A stretch of 64,000 bases of DNA, from sequence record NC_070998.1. One strand, 5' to 3'. Position numbers and translations under genes: made by a program. Shown here one piece after another: positions 14,209 to 58,191 of this stretch. Each line of letters starts with the position of its first letter. Within the stretch, counting starts at the first letter, position 1. The notes beneath the pieces are model-generated. The model did no database searches and was not told the origin of the DNA. It worked only from the letters and a program-made list of their open reading frames with translations.

Positions 14209-15255
14209 ATGATAAATGTTTATTTCTCAGAATTACCTAAAACTTTAACTGAAATATTAGGGTTAAAGTACGATGGTACTATGTCTTATGAAGAACGCGT
14301 TCAGAAAAGATATGATTACATTAAAGAACAGTACGAACTAGATAACAAATATGAAGGATGGGATTACTTAGAGAATGTTAAATACGGTTTAAAGTTTGAT
14401 CATTTAATTACTTTTGAATATATGATATCTACTAAAGGTAGGATTTTAACTTTATTTATGCAAGAAGGAAGATATAAAGTACTTAGAGGAGATATTAGTA
14501 GGACTGGGTACAGTAACCAAACTATAACTATGGATAAATCTGGTTATAAGTGTTCGCGGCACCGATCCTTGTCTTCAACATTCATCCCTAAACCAAGTCA
14601 TTATAAACAAGGAATAAATCGTTTAGTAGTTAATCATAAAGATTTAATTAAGTTAAATAACCACTTTACTAATTTAGAATGGTGTACTAATCAGGAGAAT
14701 TTACGTCATCAAGTTATTGAGCATGGCAAGGTTAACGTTTATTTTAATCAAATATTTGAAGGTACGGTAGAAATAGATTGTAAATACAAAGGTGTTAAGT
14801 TTAAAGTATTTGGGGCGGAGGGGTTAGAAGAAATAGGACTTTACCGTGGATGTATTAATGAAATTTTCTCTGGTAGAAAGGAGCTTTCATTTGGTTGTAG
14901 TTGGAAGATAATAACTCAGGAAGAGGCTGATAAACTTCCAGATATTCCAGAATTCATTAAAGATAAGTTTATAAACAACATACCCTATACGGATATAAGA
15001 GTTAAACCTTTGAAAGGTACTGTTGTTAGGGACTGTGAATATAAAGGTTTAGAATTCGTAACTTATGGTAAACAAGAACTAGTGTCTTTAGGGTTTAATC
15101 AAGGTAATGTTTCAGTTTCTATCACAACCGGAAAGGTTACCCAGAGTTGTTTATGGGAATATATTTCCAGAGATGAGGCAGAATTATTACAAAGAGGATT
15201 AACTAAAGATCAACAGAAAGTTATTGTTACCAAGAGAGGACCTAATAAGAAGTAA
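14209..15255 (+). mobile_element. Free-standing HNH endonuclease with two C-terminal NUMOD1-like repeats
   Basis: VNHKDLIKLNNHFTNLEW; two ~62-aa GTV..DC.YKG...W..IS repeats; close paralog of 50898..51941. Confidence 0.88.
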
Positions 15256-29208: not shown

Positions 29209-29390
29209 AGAACAGTTTATGCTAAGTTCATCAGGATTGATAATACTTACTAGTTTATTGATAAAGGCTGTAACTAGTAAACTAGAGTTTACACCTGGAA
29301 CGTTACAAGATTCAGATTTCTACGCTTTAATTAAATCAATTGGTGAAAATCTAGTTTATTAAACTTTTACATTAAATCTAGGAGAAGAAA

Positions 29391-29897
29391 ATGAAACTAA
29401 CAATGCGTGAAGTTAATCTCATGATTAACAATAACATCTATCTCTTTGGGAAATTCCTGGATAAGGAGATAGATCGAGTAGAGATCAAGTTACCGGATAA
29501 CGAAGAAGTGGGAGTTGATCGCACTATTGTTTTCCAACATGGCACTGAAGAGAATGGGGTGATACAGTTTATTACTGGTGATAAGGATCCGATCACAAAG
29601 AAGATCAAGATTAAAGTACGGGAAGAGGAACTCCACGTAAAACTTGCATCTAAACTGGAGCTGGCAGAGGCATTAATTCAGCGAGAACTGGGGGACATTA
29701 TGCTGGAATCCAGTTTCAATGAAATGGTGGATGATCCGGAAGTGAATAAGCAGGTGTGTCCATTTATTTCCAATAAGAGAATTGATGAGTACGTTCTCAC
29801 ATCCACACAGGAACTGGATGGTAGATTGTCAATAATTTTGTTGAGTCTTTATATTCAAGGTTCGTACTGGATTGATCGACCCATGGAAGTAAAATAA
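29391..29897 (+). CDS. Hypothetical early protein
   Basis: 168 aa, TCTAGGAGAAGAAA leader, terminator at 29913..29944. Confidence 0.72.
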   Translation: MKLTMREVNLMINNNIYLFGKFLDKEIDRVEIKLPDNEEVGVDRTIVFQHGTEENGVIQFITGDKDPITKKIKIKVREEELHVKLASKLELAEALIQRELGDIMLESSFNEMVDDPEVNKQVCPFISNKRIDEYVLTSTQELDGRLSIILLSLYIQGSYWIDRPMEVK

Positions 29898-29981
29898 ATA
29901 ATAACTAACGATAACTTACTCTGGGCCTTAACCCAGAGTAAGTTCTGTTTTTCATATTACTAATAAGTCTAGGAGAAGAAA

Positions 29982-30341
29982 ATGAAATTACGTATGGATG
30001 TATTGAAAAGTAACATTGGTTCTAAAAGTGTAGAACTTGTTAAGTTTATTCGTAAAGAGATTGAAGAGGTCAGTTTTGCTATAACTGTTGATATGGATTA
30101 CCGGATGGTAATGAAACCAGCTTACGGATCACTTTACTCCACTTCCGTAATTGATACAGTTACCAAAGAAGTAAAGGATGAGGTAAACCATAGACAACGT
30201 TTCTTTGGTCATCTGGAAAGATTACACGGTAACGATATACCTTGTTGGAATTTTGTTTGGGATGAAGACAACAAGGTATTTAACTATGGCTGGGATAAAT
30301 ACGGTAGATTAGTAAAAATAGATTTAGGGATTTTTCACTAA
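29982..30341 (+). CDS. Chimeric kinase-like protein A2 (C-terminal half only)
   Basis: C-terminal WDEDNKVFNYGWDKYGRLVK matches A1; unrelated N-terminus lacks Gly loop and VIK. Confidence 0.62.
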   Translation: MKLRMDVLKSNIGSKSVELVKFIRKEIEEVSFAITVDMDYRMVMKPAYGSLYSTSVIDTVTKEVKDEVNHRQRFFGHLERLHGNDIPCWNFVWDEDNKVFNYGWDKYGRLVKIDLGIFH

Positions 30342-46796: not shown

Positions 46797-48191
46797 ATGT
46801 CAACTTTAGCGAATGTACTTGAGCAGTATCAAATACAACATCTTCTTCCAACCACTCTATTTGATAAAATTATTGAAGAGTCAGGTTATACACCAGAAGG
46901 TGATGACGAAAGCTTTTACCAGCCTCTTTATCCAGACATTGAAGATTTTAATTATCGGCATGATACTACTACAGTTCATCCGATCTATCTGAATGATTTC
47001 GATTTTAATATAGAAGAAGATCGAGAAAAGATTACTGCTCTACTACGTACCGAATATGAAGGAAACAATTTCGATACAGTCGCGAGCTGCACTTGTAAGA
47101 AACATCGGACTAATGCGTACCTTGGTACAAGTTTCGTTTGTGACAGTTGTGGAGATCCTGTCACTAAACCACTTGGCGAGAAAATCGAAACCAAAGTCTG
47201 GCTTCGCACTCCTGCTAATGTGTCAGGTTTTATTAATCCTACTATTGCGGAAGTGTTCTTTCGTAAACTTAACACCAAAACTCCTAAGGTAAATTTGATG
47301 GAGTATTGGATTAACAAAGAGTTTAGAAATGAAAAGCGTTTTAGAGACCCAAGTCATAGTGCGTTTAAAATAGCTTGTAAACTAGAAGCTTTCCGTTTGT
47401 CGCTCAATATCGAATTTGGATATAACGAGTTCGTTGACAATATGGATTTGATTATCAGATCAGCTATTGAACACGACACTAATGGTGTTCTGGATCTTAC
47501 TGAAAAGAACCGTGAACATTATGCGATGTTCTGGGAAAAATTCAAATCAAGAGCTGTAGCTCAACATCTCCCTTTGCCTAACAAGGTAACCTCTATTGTC
47601 GAGTCTGACCAACGAGATAAATATGTTAATAAGGAGAAGAGTGATCTTGAAAAGATCTTTTACACCATTGCTGATATGTATCCAGCTTATGACTATCGTT
47701 CTACTGAGAACGCAGAGATCATGGGGAAGATCTTTACTAAACTCAAAAACATGATGTTGGATGTAACTGAATCTATCCTCTTCAAGAAGAAAGGGATGAT
47801 TCGATATCACGCTGGTGCTGGTAAGCTACCAATGACTGGTCGTTCTATTATCACAGGTGAATCTGGTGTTTGTCGCTCAGACACTATCATCGTTCCCTGG
47901 TTGTACGGAATAACTTGTTTGGATAAACACCTAACTAACTGGCTGTATCGGAAAGGTTATACCCCGCTGAAAGTAAAGGAGATTATACGTTCTGCTGCTA
48001 ACTTTAAACATCCTGTTGTAGAGGAGTTCTTTAACTGGGTAGAAAGTAATCGATACGCCATTGCAACGTGCGGTCGAAATCCTTCTATTCAGTATTTGTC
48101 AGCACGTGGTTTCTTTGTACAGTTTAACCGCGATGTAGAAGATAAATCCATCCGGATTCCGATCACTACAGTTAAGGAATTTAATGCCGAT
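46797..48191 (+). CDS. nvRNAP beta-prime N-terminal subunit (phiKZ gp55-like), exon 1
   Basis: CTC/CDSC zinc finger, RNPS motif; ends FNAD at GAT, a U-ending 5' splice site. Confidence 0.9.
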
Positions 48192-48665
48192 CGAAATGTA
48201 TTTAGCATACATGTGGGAAAATAACTTAAACTATTTTCTCCAGTTAAATACACTCAGTCCCCCTAGGGTGAAAGTCCTAGTGAGGTACCTTTTGAATTGC
48301 TGGAAAGTCCACAAAAGTTACTTACCTAAGCTTAATTAGAAATGATTAAGTTAGTGGTGTCGAAAGACAGAAACAACAAGTAACCTGTCCTACGCTAAGA
48401 AATAATGCTAAGGGATACTAACAAGGGATAATCAGCCTCCGAGGATCTAAGTATATTCGTGATGAATAGATAGGATTCAGGTTCAACGACTGTCCCGTGG
48501 CTGGGAGTAGGGAAATCAGATTTCCTGAAGTATTAGGCACCTAACCGTGTAAAGACGTAGGTGATGGTATAGTCTGCTCCTCTAGTAATGTAGAGGCGGG
48601 TGTCTTAGCGCACCGGTGTTATTATGATAGCCAAAATGGCGAACGGTAATAACACGGACATAAGG
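48192..48665 (+). mobile_element. Group I intron 1 (474 nt, no ORF)
   Basis: P AATTGCTGGAAA, Q ATAATCAGC, R GTTCAACGACTG, S GTATAGTC; P3 GGTACCT/AGGCACC; terminal G at 48665. Confidence 0.88.
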
Positions 48666-48674
48666 TTCGACGGT
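48666..48674 (+). CDS. nvRNAP beta-prime exon 2 (9-nt micro-exon, Phe-Asp-Gly)
   Basis: TTCGACGGT is preceded by G and ends in T; joining exons restores NADFDGD. Confidence 0.85.
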
Positions 48675-49826
48675 AAACTTTTGCTGTCATTAAACCCTTT
48701 CAATTGCTGGAAACCCCTTAGAGCTTAATCAACTAAAGCGGAATTGGAAACAATAAACGTAAATGTTTGAAAATGATTAAGATTGGGCAATCAGCAGCGA
48801 AGCTTCTAAATACATTTGAGATGAATGGATACGAAGAACGTTCAACGACTACGTTCCCAGAAGCCTGGGATGATGAGGGCGCTTTAAAGCGAAGATATAG
48901 TCTCTACCGGTATGAAAGTATCGGATGGAAATCCCTGACCGGAATTCCACGTGATCTAGCGAATCACGAAGAGTCCTAAAAAGACGGAGAACAATAATGT
49001 TGTTAATACCTGAATCCGATGGGTTCTTTGTTACTGAAACTGGTCGAGTATACGACAAAGACGGCAAAGAACGAAATTACTACACCAACGGAGACGGGTA
49101 TATTACCGCCTCGATCTCTATTGGTGGTAAGTGGCAAACATTTGGGGTACAGCGGTTGGTCATGTTAGCCTATGAACCGATTGATAATCCAGATGACTAC
49201 ACGGTCAATCATATTGACCTTGATAAAACCAATAACAACAAACCAAATTTAGAATGGCTGACAACAAAGTGGAACAATATCCATTCTGCTATTTTTAACA
49301 GTAAAGGTAAACGCCCTGTTGTCAGATGTTTGAATGGTGATGAAGAAATGTTCATCAAAGATGTGATGACGCTTCCCACAATTCTTGGTGTCGATATCCA
49401 GCAAATATGGTTTGCAATTAAGAACTCAACCCAGATAAATGGATGGTCCATTTCACCGATCCCTTATGACGATAAAGAAATTATCCGATTATTGAACAGT
49501 TCCATTGGAACTGTTGATGGACCAGTGAGACCAGTTAGATGTTTAGACATCGAAACTGGAATTTGGAAAAATTACAAGAGTATGAAAGAAATGGCTAATG
49601 AATTTGGTGTTGGTATAACACACATCAGACATCGCTTAGCTACCTTTGAACGTCCTCGTATATTTCTCCAACGTTACATTATTCTGGATGATGGAGTTTC
49701 AGATGAGTTCATCACCCCAGAACTAATCGCCATGTTAAAGATGACTTGGACGAAGAAAAGAAAGCGTTGGTCAGAACGCTGTAATTAGGACTCGATAAAA
49801 ACCACTTATGTGGAACAATGTGATAG
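48675..49826 (+). mobile_element. Group I intron 2 (1152 nt) carrying an HNH gene
   Basis: P1 GACGGT/GCTGTC with U-G; P AATTGCTGGAAA, Q AATCAGCAG, R GTTCAACGACTA, S AAGATATAGTC; terminal G at 49826. Confidence 0.9.
48997..49788 (+). CDS. Intron-encoded HNH homing endonuclease
   Basis: GDGY, VQRLV and VNHIDLDKTNNNKPNLEW motifs; GGAG SD; lies 3' of the catalytic core. Confidence 0.88.
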   Translation: MLLIPESDGFFVTETGRVYDKDGKERNYYTNGDGYITASISIGGKWQTFGVQRLVMLAYEPIDNPDDYTVNHIDLDKTNNNKPNLEWLTTKWNNIHSAIFNSKGKRPVVRCLNGDEEMFIKDVMTLPTILGVDIQQIWFAIKNSTQINGWSISPIPYDDKEIIRLLNSSIGTVDGPVRPVRCLDIETGIWKNYKSMKEMANEFGVGITHIRHRLATFERPRIFLQRYIILDDGVSDEFITPELIAMLKMTWTKKRKRWSERCN

Positions 49827-50012
49827 GATAACATGTATCTATTCTTTATCCCCGATATGGTGGGTAAAGTAAATGCGTATAGTAACTGGGGGCACCATCA
49901 AATGGTCGATCCAAACAAGCCGTTTAAAACAAGTAGATTTGTTGCAGCGACACGAACTAATCTCTTAAACATAAATAGCGTACTTCTTAATACACCGATT
50001 GAGGAGGACTAA
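49827..50012 (+). CDS. nvRNAP beta-prime exon 3
   Basis: DNMYLFFIPD...EED*, 61 aa; spliced protein is 529 aa. Confidence 0.85.
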   Translation, partial: DNMYLFFIPDMVGKVNAYSNWGHHQMVDPNKPFKTSRFVAATRTNLLNINSVLLNTPIEED

Positions 50013-50013
50013 T

Positions 50014-50664
50014 TTGAACGTAACATCAGCTTTCAATAGAGGTTGTGGTGGAAGCTTGAGTAGTGAAGCTGCCCAAGTCTACGATAGCTTCATGGGAAAT
50101 ATGTTGCAGAAATACGAAAACTTAACTGGATGGTTGAGCGAAACTGTAGATTCTGTAAAGAAAGCTCATAGCAACTTCATGTCTTCTAAAATGTGGGAGT
50201 TCTCTAACCGTATTGGTAGAACAGGACACTACGTAGGAAGATTCGAAATCGGTTATCTGTCAGAAGTTCATTTCCAACAACAAGCCACTGGGTTTATGCG
50301 TAATTACATTATGGCTAATCCTAACATGATGGCGTTGTATGAAACTGAACAAGTTTCTGGATATGGTGGAGATTTCTCTGACTTGTGTTCTGGTATTGGT
50401 CATGGTAACTATTACTATGATAAAGCGATGGACGGATTAGTTACTCAAAATGAGAGTGATCAATACTTCTATCGTACTTACCACAATTCAATGGACGAAG
50501 GTACACATCTGAGTCCTAGAGAACGTTTCGATATTCAACGTACCTGGCGTGCAACCGACCACCATATTAAGAACTTGTTTGACTCGTCTAACATTGCGGG
50601 TGGAAACATTCTTACTTTGGAAGAAGTTGAAGAACGTCGTAAAGCAGAAGAAGACAAAGAGTAA
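50014..50664 (+). CDS. Conserved Chimalliviridae core protein (probably phiKZ gp59-like)
   Basis: TTG at 50014 after GAGGAG; FMRNYIMANP, GY and YDKAMDG motifs; synteny. Confidence 0.6.
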   Translation: MNVTSAFNRGCGGSLSSEAAQVYDSFMGNMLQKYENLTGWLSETVDSVKKAHSNFMSSKMWEFSNRIGRTGHYVGRFEIGYLSEVHFQQQATGFMRNYIMANPNMMALYETEQVSGYGGDFSDLCSGIGHGNYYYDKAMDGLVTQNESDQYFYRTYHNSMDEGTHLSPRERFDIQRTWRATDHHIKNLFDSSNIAGGNILTLEEVEERRKAEEDKE

Positions 50665-50737
50665 TTAAACTGAACTACCTGAGGAGTTATCCTTGGGTAG
50701 TTCTTTTAACTGCTTTAAAAATTAAGGAAATAGACAA

Positions 50738-50860
50738 ATGAAGCAAGTTCACGAAGATGATATTTGTGTTGTAACACGATCTGAAGTTGATGTTAATCGT
50801 TACTATGGAAGTGGACGTCGTAGTAAACTACCTCTGCCGATGCTTAGCGTAAAGGTTTAA
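50738..50860 (+). pseudogene. Truncated 5' copy (40 aa) of the Tad1-like gene at 51975
   Basis: MKQVHEDDICVVTRSEVDVNRYYG versus MKEVHKDNICVVTRSEVDVNRYYG; same AAGGAAATAGACAA leader. Confidence 0.88.
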
Positions 50861-50897
50861 AATCAGTTATTTAGTTAACAATATTAGAGAGTTAAAT

Positions 50898-51941
50898 ATG
50901 ATAAATGTTTATTTCTCAGAATTACCTAAAACTTTAACTGAAATATTGGGGTTAAAGTACGATGAAACAATGTCTTATGAAGAACGAGTTCAGAAAAGAT
51001 ATGATTATATTAAACAGCAGTATGAACTAGATAACAAATATGAGGGATGGGATTACCTTGAACATATCAAAGGTAGAGCATTATTTAATCATTTCATTAC
51101 CTTTGATTATTTAATTTCTACCAAAGGTAGAATTTTAACTTTATTTGTACGAAAAAATAAATATAAAGTTTTAACTGGTGATGTGGGAACTGAAGGTTAC
51201 AAAAGACAGGCTTTACACTTAAATAACGTGGTTTATAAATTCACTAATCATCGTGCCGTCGGATCCACTTTCGTTCCTAAACAGAACCACTACAAAGAAA
51301 GTTTAAATATTTTAGAAGTAAACCATAAAGACTCGATTAAGTTAAATAACAATTTCTTTAATTTGGAATGGTGTACCGGGAAAGAAAATGTACAACATAA
51401 TCACATCGAGCGATCAGATAAAAACATTTATTTTAATCAAAACTTCGAAGCGACGGTAGAAATAGATTGTAAATACAAAGGTGTTAAGTTCAAAGTTTTT
51501 GGTGCGGAAGGTCTTAATGAAATTGGGCTGGTTGCCAATCGGGTCCGTAAAGTTCTAATTGGTTCAACGACAGTTTCCTTCGGTTGTAGTTGGAAAATAA
51601 TAACTCAAGAAGAAGCTGAACAACTTCCTGATATTCCAGAGTTTATTAAGAATAAATTTCTTAATGATAGAAACTATATGAATCATCGTATTAAACCTTT
51701 AAAAGGTACTGTTGTTAAAGATTGTAAATATCAGGGACTGGAATTTGTCATTTACGGTAAACAGGAATTGCGAGGTTTTGGATTTAGCCAAGGCGGGATC
51801 TCAAAAATAACGTCAACCGGGATTTCACACCAAGGATGTCTTTTTGAATATATTTCCAGAGATGAAGCTGAGTTATTACCCAGAGGGTTAACTAAAGAAC
51901 AGCAAAAAGTTATTGTAATTAAACGTGACGCTACTGAATGA
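50898..51941 (+). mobile_element. Free-standing HNH endonuclease, close paralog of 14209..15255
   Basis: First ~50 nt identical to 14209; VNHKDSIKLNNNFFNLEW; two C-terminal repeats. Confidence 0.88.
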
Positions 51942-51974
51942 ATATGTTTCATATTCTATAAAGGAAATAGACAA

Positions 51975-52301
51975 ATGAAAGAAGTACATAAAGACAATAT
52001 TTGTGTTGTAACACGTTCAGAAGTTGATGTCAATCGTTATTATGGTCGTGGTCGCAATAATAATCTTCCATTTTGCATGCTTAGGTATCAGGACTCAAGT
52101 GATCCCAATAAAGAAAATGGTTTCACTTTGGAAGGTGTAATCGCTTCTGCTATTGATCGTTTGGAACACTTTAATACTGGACAGTTTAAATGTGATCACA
52201 ATGATCGTGCTTTGGAACATCTTCGTGGTGCATTGAAAGAACTCAATGACCGAGTAGAAGATCGTAAAGCGCGAGATGTTTACAACACCGACAAAGCTTA
52301 G
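51975..52301 (+). CDS. tad1: Tad1-like nucleotide-signal sponge (anti-Thoeris/anti-CBASS)
   Basis: DRL..F..G.F.C..N..AL.H...AL..LN.RVEDR..R.V..T.K matches the recalled Tad1 C-terminal core. Confidence 0.75.
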   Translation: MKEVHKDNICVVTRSEVDVNRYYGRGRNNNLPFCMLRYQDSSDPNKENGFTLEGVIASAIDRLEHFNTGQFKCDHNDRALEHLRGALKELNDRVEDRKARDVYNTDKA

Positions 52302-52309
52302 GAGTTAAC

Positions 52310-52798
52310 ATGGGTGCTGGATATGCTTCTTTCCAGATGGATTTAAAAAGCGCTGTAGCGATTAATGCAGCAATTGAAAAAGAAGAGATTAAGTGTGCTG
52401 ATGACTTTCACGAGAAGTTAGCAACTAAGATTAATATTGTAGCTAATGATCTTCACGCAACACTGATGTATGACAAACGAGATCCCGACATTAGTCCAGG
52501 GATTAATCGTAAATCATATAAAGCTAAGGTAATCAATGTAGAGAAGCTAGGTGTACCAGGTAAGCAATTCTACGCCCTAGTCCTTACCCTTGAGTCGGAC
52601 GAGATCCAGAAACGTTTTAAAGAGCTCCTAGAGCTTGGGTTTGAGCATTCCTTCCCAGAGCTTAAACTCCATTGTAGTTTGTACTATGGAGATGGGACTG
52701 AACTGTGTTATAAGTTCATGAAACGCTTATTCGATGAAGGTAAACTCCCAGAATACATTACACTTTGTAATGAGAACTGGAATACTTGTAAAGACTAA
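52310..52798 (+). CDS. acb1: Acb1-like 2H phosphodiesterase (T4 gp57B-like)
   Basis: LHATLMY and LHCSLYY (two HxT/S motifs), ALVLTLES, LELGFEHSF; 162 aa. Confidence 0.72.
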   Translation: MGAGYASFQMDLKSAVAINAAIEKEEIKCADDFHEKLATKINIVANDLHATLMYDKRDPDISPGINRKSYKAKVINVEKLGVPGKQFYALVLTLESDEIQKRFKELLELGFEHSFPELKLHCSLYYGDGTELCYKFMKRLFDEGKLPEYITLCNENWNTCKD

Positions 52799-56305: not shown

Positions 56306-56318
56306 AAGGAATATCAAT

Positions 56319-56354
56319 ATGTCTCAACAACAAGCTTTCCAACGTCGTCCATAA
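56319..56354 (+). pseudogene. Truncated 5' copy (11 aa) of the ChmC-like gene at 57454
   Basis: MSQQQAFQRRP* with AAGGA SD versus MSQQQTFQRRPQLL. Confidence 0.85.
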
Positions 56355-56418: not shown

Positions 56419-57435
56419 ATGTGTGAAATAAAATTAATATCAGATATTCTTAATCTATCCTTAGCTAAGGAAGATCATGAAGAAACTGTACAAAAACGTT
56501 GGGATTATATTCAAGAGCAATTAGAGAAAGATCCTAATTGGGTGGGTTATGACCACGCCGAATACCATCACGGTAGGGTTGATCTCTTTATAAACTTTAA
56601 TGGATGTGTAATTTCAACCAATGGAGAAGTGTTTAACAACACCGGGGTATTGAATAAAGTTTACACTAATAATTGTAAGTATAAATTTACAACTTTAAAA
56701 AATAAAGAAAAATCAAGTAGCTACTTTATACATAGATTGTTGGCCTCAACATTTTTACCTAGAAAAAATGATCTGGTTTCTAAACCTTTCCATAGATTGC
56801 AAGTGAACCATAAGGACGGAGTTAAAGCCAATAATATTTTATTTAATCTTGAATGGTGCACTAGTAAAGAGAATATTATTCACGCGTTCGATAAAGGTTT
56901 GTGCAAAGGTATTTCTGGGTCGGAAAACTCAAGAACTATACCTCTTTTGGCAACAGTGGTAATGATCGGACCTTTCAAAGGAAAGCAGTTTGTTTTAGTT
57001 GGTAAGCAAGAGTTTATAAATCATGGGTTTCACCAAGGTGGTGCGCATAGATGTTATAACAAAGATCTAGAAACTTCTAATGGATGCACTTGGGTTGGTA
57101 TCGATCCTGATAAGATATCGGACTACCCAAGAACACCGCCAGAAGGATACTTGGATTATTACCGCGAGAACTATCTCCTTTCCATGCCAACTTCTATACC
57201 AATAGTAGGAACCATAGAAAGAGGTCCACATGCTGGATACACTTTCTGCTTAATAGGTAGAAAGGAAATAAAAGCTGCCGGTTTTATCGACTCTCATGTA
57301 AGAGAAGCTGGACATAAAAACGGTATGCATAAAGGTTGTCGATGGAAGGTTATATCTAAAGAAGAAGTTGGCCATTACCAAAGAACCTTACCAAAAGAAA
57401 TTTTTAACACTATTCCAAAATACAACGAAAAGTAA
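56419..57435 (+). mobile_element. Free-standing HNH endonuclease, same family
   Basis: VQKRWDYI, IHRLLASTF, VNHKDGVKANNILFNLEW, two C-terminal repeats. Confidence 0.88.
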
Positions 57436-57453
57436 TTTATTAAGGAAAAAAAT

Positions 57454-58191
57454 ATGTCACAACAACAAACATTTCAAAGACGTCCTCAACTACTTGCCAA
57501 TGACTATCGTTACCCGGCTCCAATGTCCCGTGAACCTGTAGAGGGTGCTAAGTACCCTGCGCGTTGGACTTGGGAACAAGGTCTGGATGGTAAGATCTAT
57601 TTTAAAGTTAACGACGGGGTATTCGGTAAAGACGACCGTAACGCCAAAATGAAAGAAGTCGAAATGTCTGCCATGGATCGACTGTCCCTGTTCGAACTAA
57701 TGAAAGATGCTTGTGATAACGCCAACTTCACCAAAACCCAGTACCACGTCAAGAAAGTTACTTTCGGTGCTGGCGGTCGTTTGAACGAACATCCGTCTAC
57801 TCTTGGCATCTTTACTGTCATGCGTAGCCAAGAAGGACGAATCTCGGTAGGTTATACCAAAGGTTCCTACAAAGTTATGTTTGAATTCAAATCACCATTT
57901 GATTCAATGATTATGGTATCTAAAGACGGTGAACCTTGTGAAGACCCAGGTTTGATGAGTCGTGTATATTGCAAGGCGTTTATCAATTTCTACGGCCCAT
58001 ACCTTAACGAGCTAGAGATTGCCGGTTATAAGCCGCGCGAGAGCAAGAACGCTGGTGGTAATAACAACGCTGGTGGTAACAGTGGTTGGAACGGCAATGG
58101 TGGTAATAACTGGAATGGTAACGGTGGCGGTAACAATAGTTCACAACGTAAACCAGATCCCACTTCTTTTGATGATGACTTGGACTTTTAA
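57454..58191 (+). CDS. ChmC-like nucleus-associated nucleic-acid-binding protein (phiKZ gp67 position)
   Basis: 245 aa with G/N-rich disordered tail and acidic FDDDLDF end, directly upstream of the gp68-like gene. Confidence 0.68.
   Translation: MSQQQTFQRRPQLLANDYRYPAPMSREPVEGAKYPARWTWEQGLDGKIYFKVNDGVFGKDDRNAKMKEVEMSAMDRLSLFELMKDACDNANFTKTQYHVKKVTFGAGGRLNEHPSTLGIFTVMRSQEGRISVGYTKGSYKVMFEFKSPFDSMIMVSKDGEPCEDPGLMSRVYCKAFINFYGPYLNELEIAGYKPRESKNAGGNNNAGGNSGWNGNGGNNWNGNGGGNNSSQRKPDPTSFDDDLDF

Follow-up and report, generated by a model that had tools for sequence, protein, structure and literature searches.

The window analyzed here is a stretch of 64,000 nt (sequence record NC_070998.1) from the Aeromonas jumbo phage PS1 (MN032614.2), a Ferozepurvirus with a genome of 237 kb. 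The region is 100% identical to the phage record, and window coordinates equal record coordinates. Three open reading frames at 50738-50860, 50898-51941, and 51975-52301 are annotated in GenBank only as hypothetical proteins PS1_0054 to PS1_0056. They represent a gene remnant, an HNH endonuclease gene, and an intact gene of the Tad1 family. The locus is composed of the following features:

50672-50703, + strand: intrinsic-terminator-like hairpin (14-bp stem and T run), 3' of an upstream 221-aa gene
50721-50847, + strand: upstream repeat copy, native leader with ribosome-binding site (RBS) and codons 1-36, A-type allele
50738-50860, + strand: remnant ORF PS1_0054, 40 codons (36 native and four junction codons, then TAA)
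50848-52084, + strand: putative inserted cassette of 1237 bp (filler, HNH gene, spacer, foreign RBS and 36 codons)
50848-50897, + strand: filler with the ribosome-binding region of the HNH gene, 50 nt, of which only the last ~20 nt are like other cassettes of the HNH clade
50898-51941, + strand: gene of an HNH (HNH_3 / I-HmuI-like) endonuclease, 347 aa
51942-51957, + strand: spacer from the HNH stop codon to the imported leader, 16 nt
51958-52084, + strand: downstream repeat copy, imported leader with RBS and codons 1-36, including a B-type patch (GRGRNNNLPFCM)
51975-52301, + strand: hybrid Tad1-family gene, intact, 108 aa (imported codons 1-36 and native codons 37-108)
52310-52798, + strand: Acb1-like (anti-CBASS) gene, neighbor and context (Pfam PF23474, E = 6e-14)

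The hairpin lies outside the repeat and, according to the alignment, is common to the HNH-less relatives. Both boundaries of the cassette fall at a common octamer, ATGCTTAG, and the cassette is missing from the phages PS2, ACP1, pAEv1810, and AVP1. A scan for sigma-70 promoters returned 9 matches against 11.4 expected from shuffled sequence, i.e., not above chance, and therefore we do not claim a promoter.

A direct repeat flanks the HNH gene

The repeat search delimits a direct repeat of 127 nt (50721-50847 and 51958-52084), ungapped, identical at 100/127 positions (79%), and with a spacing of 1237 nt. A preliminary description, made from the sequence alone, had recognized an ungapped duplicate of 124 nt (50724-50847 and 51961-52084); it falls within this repeat, which is far above chance. 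Local alignment of the two HNH flanks yields a score of 119, compared to a mean of 19.4 and a maximum of 25 in 200 shuffles, and tblastx between both flanks gives E = 2e-19. There is one repeat family at the locus, and its 127-nt pair is the longest among the short-range direct repeats of the window.

Each copy consists of a leader of 17 nt, including the Shine-Dalgarno sequence (AAGGAAATAGACAA), and of codons 1-36. Identity declines along the repeat, from 16/17 in the leader over 50/60 in the next stretch to 34/50 in the last 50 nt. Between the copies, 13 of the 36 codons differ synonymously and nine with a change of the amino acid, which confirms the earlier reading of a leader and some 36 codons with both kinds of changes. 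Equally, the upstream copy does end in a stop, a TAA four codons past the homology, and the downstream copy is intact, encoding the whole protein of 108 aa.

Elsewhere in the window, at 29373-29416 and 29964-30007, a leader and first codons are repeated over 44 nt at a distance of 591 nt and with 77% identity. No HNH gene is associated, and this repeat probably marks two tandem paralogous small genes.

The upstream copy matches the HNH-less PS2 allele

The HNH gene shows a presence/absence polymorphism: It occurs in PS1, and not in PS2, ACP1, pAEv1810, and AVP1, and the flanks are otherwise collinear. These four phages are 92-96% identical to PS1 across the region and possess a single intact 108-aa gene, which directly follows the terminator of the upstream gene. 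HNH-less alleles were also found in four metagenome contigs. Neither the four phages nor the four contigs carry the duplication, so it does not precede the element in any HNH-less relative at hand.

Of the two copies in PS1, it is the upstream one that fits the HNH-less allele of PS2, with 126/127 identities up to ...ATGCTTAG. The downstream copy, counted in alignment columns, agrees with PS2 at 100/127 positions inside the repeat and at 215/217 after it. Hence, at the very octamer where the upstream copy loses its likeness to PS2, the downstream copy gains it. A single insertion of 1237 bp at 50848-52084 would explain both discontinuities completely. Since the upstream copy is native and the downstream copy is foreign only in its duplicated part, the element landed inside the gene. 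The comparison with PS2 thus bears out the insertion into a gene that had been claimed, and without the RBS and 5' end that the insert supplies, the gene would not be whole.

It had further been proposed that the gene is restored at the DNA level, as an alternative to an intron or intein. This holds as well: The cassette contains no intron signal and its ORFs are separate, so that neither splicing nor an intein is involved. More precisely, an Rfam E-value scan of 47800-52500 detected no group I intron in 50848-51974; intron matches occur only at 48240-48924.

The latter are two tandem matches to the group I intron family (Rfam RF00028), one at 48240-48595 with 42.4 bits, which is below the gathering score, and one at 48610-48924 with 79.6 bits. 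They lie directly 3' of a 475-aa ORF similar to an RNA polymerase beta subunit (46797-48224, PHROG 2987) and are followed by an HNH gene at 48997-49788. Both are absent in pAEv1810; the first one is common to ACP1 and AVP1, and the HNH of AVP1 at this place is a different one.

Source of the imported gene start

Codons 24-36 of the imported gene start form the B-type patch (GRGRNNNLPFCM), which is 38/41 identical to the HNH-less pAEv1810 allele and is native in the four HNH-less metagenome contigs (L026-L029, about 82% identical to PS1). Codons 1-23 are unlike every sampled allele, mostly at synonymous sites. Because the patch is native in HNH-less relatives, the imported end is an ordinary orthologous allele of an unsampled donor lineage and not a product of recoding by the element. 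Along this line, the 13 synonymous and nine replacement changes argue that the downstream end evolved as a working coding sequence elsewhere, and not as a decaying duplicate. The preliminary description had the element supply its own RBS and a recoded 5' end. Its RBS and 5' end are retained here, and the term "recoded" is to be replaced by a diverged natural allele from a donor lineage; overall, its inference is largely supported.

The search for the donor comprised scans of IMG/VR, in which neither the 108-aa protein nor the HNH returned a match, and degenerate DNA patterns. The patterns for the imported N-terminus gave no match in metagenome or viral contigs, and the one for the B-type patch matched in HNH-less contigs only.

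The Tad1-like protein

A search of the 108-aa protein against Pfam-A gave no match. An AlphaFold2 (AF2) model of the hybrid, built on 50 homologues, reached a pLDDT of 94.3 and a pTM of 0.81, and comprises the Tad1 fold, an N-terminal sheet with a C-terminal helical hairpin. Foldseek against the PDB retrieved Tad1 chains only among the top 20 (probability 1.00, TM 0.72-0.82 over the whole length), the first match after the Tad1 chains having E = 0.05. With phmmer, the Tad1 chains 8KBH and 7UAV were matched with E = 3.7e-5, in residues 45-106 only, i.e., in the C-terminal hairpin. The label "Tad1-like" given before is therefore correct, and the rebuilt hybrid protein is confidently predicted to fold as Tad1, N-terminal sheet included. 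For the predicted role of a Tad1, sequestration of gcADPR or cyclic oligonucleotides and inhibition of Thoeris, the one piece of supporting context is the Acb1 homologue next door.

The 36 duplicated codons encode strands 1-3 and the loop into strand 4. The divergent patch coincides with a naturally hypervariable loop of the Tad1-like protein, and its divergence need therefore not reflect the target of the nuclease.

The HNH endonuclease and its relatives

The 347-aa ORF was assigned to the HNH endonucleases by three matches, to Pfam HNH_3 (22.9 bits, just under the curated cut-off of 24.8, E = 6.8e-5), to PHROG 59 (E = 3.9e-15), and to I-HmuI (1U3E, E = 0.0017), the latter aligned across VNHKD...NLEW...EN. 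The HNH catalytic motif is intact, its columns are invariant in 11 relatives, and the protein is of full length against 38 relatives.

A repeat inside the HNH gene (51448-51475 and 51703-51730, 255 nt or 85 aa apart) lies in the C-terminal part and points to two copies of a presumed C-terminal DNA-binding module. Among the relatives, variants of 491-494 aa (P0003, P0011) possess an extra N-terminal segment of ~145 aa, which repeats the N-terminal domain of the family itself.

The closest HNH relatives, with 51-68% identity, are spread over many different loci, and the nearest one in a search of 5.8 billion proteins (68% identical) resides at another locus. Most of the close relatives are intergenic, have a promoter-like block of their own, and lack a stub, i.e., an upstream remnant of the target gene. 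The intergenic copies of the clade are preceded by a conserved block of ~60 nt containing CTATAAT. The cassettes at the Tad1-like gene and at a GroEL gene (see below) are without this block, which suggests that they rely on the expression signals of their target genes.

The architecture recurs at other genes

For each HNH relative, we compared the upstream with the downstream flank and obtained three further clear cases. In all four, stub, nuclease, and intact gene follow each other in this order on the same strand, and it is the local native allele that the stub represents.

The first case is found on two metagenome contigs (L009/L010), which differ at 5/2613 positions. Here, a 47-codon stub and the HNH gene precede an intact GroEL (Cpn60) gene of 517 aa. 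The repeat extends over the leader and 30 codons, which differ by ten synonymous and six replacement changes. Compared to the HNH-less alleles of PS1, ACP1, and pAEv1810, the stub is identical at 41-42/42 leader positions and at 76-86/90 codon positions (84-86/90 for PS1/ACP1), the intact copy at 27/43 and 64-74/91 (64-66/91 for PS1/ACP1), respectively.

The second case is an RNase H gene in PS2 (L011). Its stub of 42 codons agrees with the HNH-less pAEv1810 allele at 37/37 positions of the leader and 84/93 of the codons, while the intact gene behind the PS2 HNH has a different leader and agrees at 43/93 codon positions. ACP1 has a mosaic allele at this locus. In PS2 (147316-154800), the 42-codon stub stands before an HNH of 494 aa; in PS1 (L016, 146570-151726), the same HNH (503 aa) and RNase H follow a different upstream region without a stub. 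From this difference, we conclude that stubs can be lost.

The third case lies within the window itself:

56313-56350, + strand: stub, native leader and 11 codons, TAA at once; matches HNH-less pAEv1810/ACP1
56419-57435, + strand: HNH endonuclease, 338 aa, about 30% identical to the first HNH
57448-58191, + strand: intact gene, diverged leader and 245-aa gene (start at 57454), PHROG 3284

The first 11 codons of the 245-aa gene duplicate the remnant with four synonymous changes and one replacement. Its product contains a Gly/Asn-rich region and an acidic ...DDDLDF tail, and in our own reading looks like a single-stranded-DNA-binding protein.

Flanking duplications were not detected at the HNH genes at 14209, 42405, and 48997 in the window, at PS2_0010, on the contigs L007, L012, and L022/L023, and at the RNase H locus of PS1. 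No common motif is visible in a comparison of the four junctions. As far as can be judged from the loci compared, the same architecture at four genes is a pattern rather than an accident.

Proposed course of events

We favor, with a probability of roughly 0.7, the reading that a free-standing HNH homing cassette entered the Tad1-like gene in the PS1 lineage and imported an RBS and 36 codons, such that a hybrid gene was rebuilt at the DNA level. At the level of sequence, the comparison of alleles shows the import of a cassette including a gene start, the displacement of the native start, and the rebuilding of a hybrid gene; the steps of cleavage, immunity, and homing are derived from established homing biology.

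The cassette would have entered in the course of double-strand-break repair, with ...ATGCTTAG^G, behind codon 36, or an adjacent position as its point of entry. The imported stretch would comprise, in this order, a short filler, the HNH gene, the 16-nt spacer, and the RBS and first 36 codons of the donor lineage. These codons would join in frame to the resident codons 37-108, giving a hybrid without RNA or protein splicing, and the displaced native RBS and 36 codons would stay upstream as a 40-codon stub. The nuclease may cut the A-type allele (PS2, ACP1, and the parent of the stub) within the very divergent 40 nt 5' of the junction, with repair from a cassette-bearing donor. The B-type patch in the imported end would then render the resident copy immune. 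The stub would provide the left and the gene body the right homology arm to a naive allele, so that the whole unit could home like an intron. Transcription of the cassette would probably start from the target gene's own signals, the promoter-like block of the intergenic relatives being absent.

The same cassette at the same site was not seen in two clearly different backgrounds, and the other cassettes common to PS1 and PS2 may have been inherited from an ancestor of both. At each new gene, the structure may first have formed as a one-sided repair accident from an intergenic donor. Because most close HNH relatives are intergenic and stubless, the stub architecture could also be an occasional by-product.

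Alternative explanations

This last thought can be taken further. The PS1 structure might be a one-off repair scar, a dead-end by-product that does not itself home, of a nuclease gene whose normal place is intergenic, just upstream of its target. In such an event, the right end alone would have found homology in the donor, and copying would have extended backwards across the donor's gene start and HNH gene before the left end was joined illegitimately at the break. Several observations fit: The closest HNH relatives are intergenic, have the conserved CTATAAT-containing block upstream, and leave no stub, the origin of the 50-nt filler at the left junction is not recognizable, the PS1 RNase H cassette is stubless, and searches for the same cassette in a second background gave nothing. 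We nevertheless consider this origin unlikely, given that four genes, and two HNH clades with no more than 30% identity, show the same polarity and obey the rule that the stub is native. Moreover, once formed, the insert has perfect homology arms on either side, so nothing prevents it from homing; a scar and a mobile unit differ in origin, not in present behavior.

The reverse direction of change, i.e., an ancestral duplication whose repeats recombined in the HNH-less relatives, with loss of the element, appears very improbable. PS2 is of the stub type through codon 36 (126/127), which would require a crossover within the last 8 shared bases, and separate losses would be needed in several lineages at each of the four loci. 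The stub, too, is without decay. It is true that direct repeats around an insert permit such a pop-out, and that mosaic alleles, stub-like at the 5' end and cassette-like thereafter, exist in pAEv1810 (Tad1-like gene) and ACP1 (RNase H). However, a more distant HNH-less clade has the B-type patch as its native sequence, which gives the mosaics a simpler origin.

We attach hardly any weight to a tandem duplication in place, e.g., by replication slippage around an intergenic HNH gene, with subsequent divergence. Formally, the structure does equal a direct repeat around an insert, but in the comparison with PS2 all 27 differences are in the downstream copy, against a single base in the upstream one, and the gene body that adjoins the repeat agrees at 215/217 positions. 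One-sided divergence with an excess of synonymous changes cannot follow from a recent duplication, and divergence in place is therefore excluded. Just as implausible is an assembly artefact that joined two allelic variants of a mixed phage stock: A-type and B-type ends both occur in nature, but the junctions lead from unique sequence into and out of a full-length HNH ORF, and PS1, PS2, and two metagenome samples, assembled independently, show the same layout.

Relation to known systems

For a homing cassette that enters a gene and brings a replacement gene start, the closest precedent is given by the mORFs of fungal mitochondria, of which it is the mirror image; the idea is thus not without a true precedent. 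mORFs carry a foreign C-terminal gene segment, and the native one is left as a remnant that matches close relatives (PMC3630166). Examples are atp6 of Allomyces macrogynus and atp6, atp9, cox2, and nad3 of Glomus (PMC3630166 and the Allomyces work cited there). In both systems, an endonuclease ORF is accompanied by a diverged version of one end of its target gene, the imported end is in use, the native end is retained alongside and matches close relatives, and a hybrid gene arises without splicing. Unlike mORFs, which replace the 3' end, the PS1 cassette replaces the 5' end and so must also bring an RBS, and its stub lies upstream with an RBS of its own. While mORFs are often fused in frame and encode LAGLIDADG or GIY-YIG nucleases, the PS1 ORFs are separate, the nuclease is of the HNH type, and the genome is that of a phage.

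The free-standing endonucleases SegF, SegG, and MobE of T4-like phages, known for "intronless homing", sit between genes (PMC2988022). As in these, the PS1 nuclease gene lies outside an intron or intein and is present or absent between close relatives, and divergence in the neighboring target gene is consistent with co-conversion. In contrast to them, the PS1 insert follows codon 36 of the native frame, a 127-nt repeat flanks it, and an imported start serves to rebuild the gene. HNH relatives of the same clade at other loci do fit the intergenic layout of Seg and Mob genes. The review of free-standing homing endonucleases does not mention a duplication of the target (PMC2988022). It does describe genes split by mobE (nrdA of Aeromonas phage Aeh1) and by mobA (T4 topoisomerase), where both halves are needed and nothing is duplicated (PMC2988022). 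With these, the PS1 locus shares an HNH gene within a phage coding region and a gene that is functional without splicing. There, two polypeptides assemble, whereas in PS1 the downstream ORF is complete alone and the upstream piece is redundant.

Homing of group I introns and inteins likewise involves insertion inside a gene, homology to the empty allele on either side, and restored function. In PS1, by contrast, restoration takes place at the DNA level, with no match to an intron model and no in-frame intein. Finally, segmental amplification driven by SegB produces identical tandem copies of anti-defense loci and raises gene dosage (PMC13096335). Common to both is a phage homing endonuclease with duplicated DNA at an anti-defense locus; unlike the SegB products, the PS1 copies are 21% diverged and one is truncated, and the pattern is found at GroEL and RNase H as well. 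In the open-access literature, we found no description from phages of homing endonucleases duplicating a fragment of their target.

Implications

On the usual view, homing endonucleases invade coding sequence solely where an intron or intein protects them, and are intergenic otherwise. The PS1 locus and its three look-alikes would constitute a third route in phages, on which a replacement gene start is brought along. If general, this would explain some of the short orphan ORFs beside HNH genes in phage annotations, e.g., PS1_0054, and recombination boundaries inside genes would become marked. The signature of stub, nuclease, and intact gene could then serve to find nuclease targets and insertion points computationally, and selfish nucleases would be seen creating hybrid alleles of anti-defense and core genes. 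PS1 and PS2 share a laboratory host, Aeromonas hydrophila ATCC 7966, on which both were isolated, and differ by the insert, which makes the model directly testable.

More tentatively, and with some doubt on our side, the replacement of gene starts (RBS and first 10-40 codons) could be an evolved and widespread mode of homing in large phages, with the stub as the next left homology arm. If this were true, nuclease genes would invade reading frames without splicing machinery, and their cassettes would shuttle N-terminal modules between alleles as a side effect. In PS1, a third of an anti-defense sponge protein would have been swapped, hypervariable loop included, which could alter the immune signals it can neutralize. 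The interest of the finding is raised by the recurrence of the layout; it is limited by the mitochondrial precedent and by homing being deduced from sequence.

The tail-spike cluster

The closest HNH relatives occupy a conserved slot in a tail-spike cluster on four metagenome contigs (L008, L019, L020, L021). The cluster begins with a Tail_spike_N gene of 130 aa and a gene of 133 aa; then come the HNH gene and a variable tail spike. We did not count these loci as recurrence, because the conserved 133-aa gene intervenes and the arrangement is common to many contigs. Behind the HNH, the tail spikes measure at least 723-982 aa; the called product extends beyond the locus in two of the four. The 130-aa Tail_spike_N protein has about 50% amino-acid identity to the N-terminus of the downstream spike, a likeness that may go back to old paralogy or to an ancient event of the same kind.
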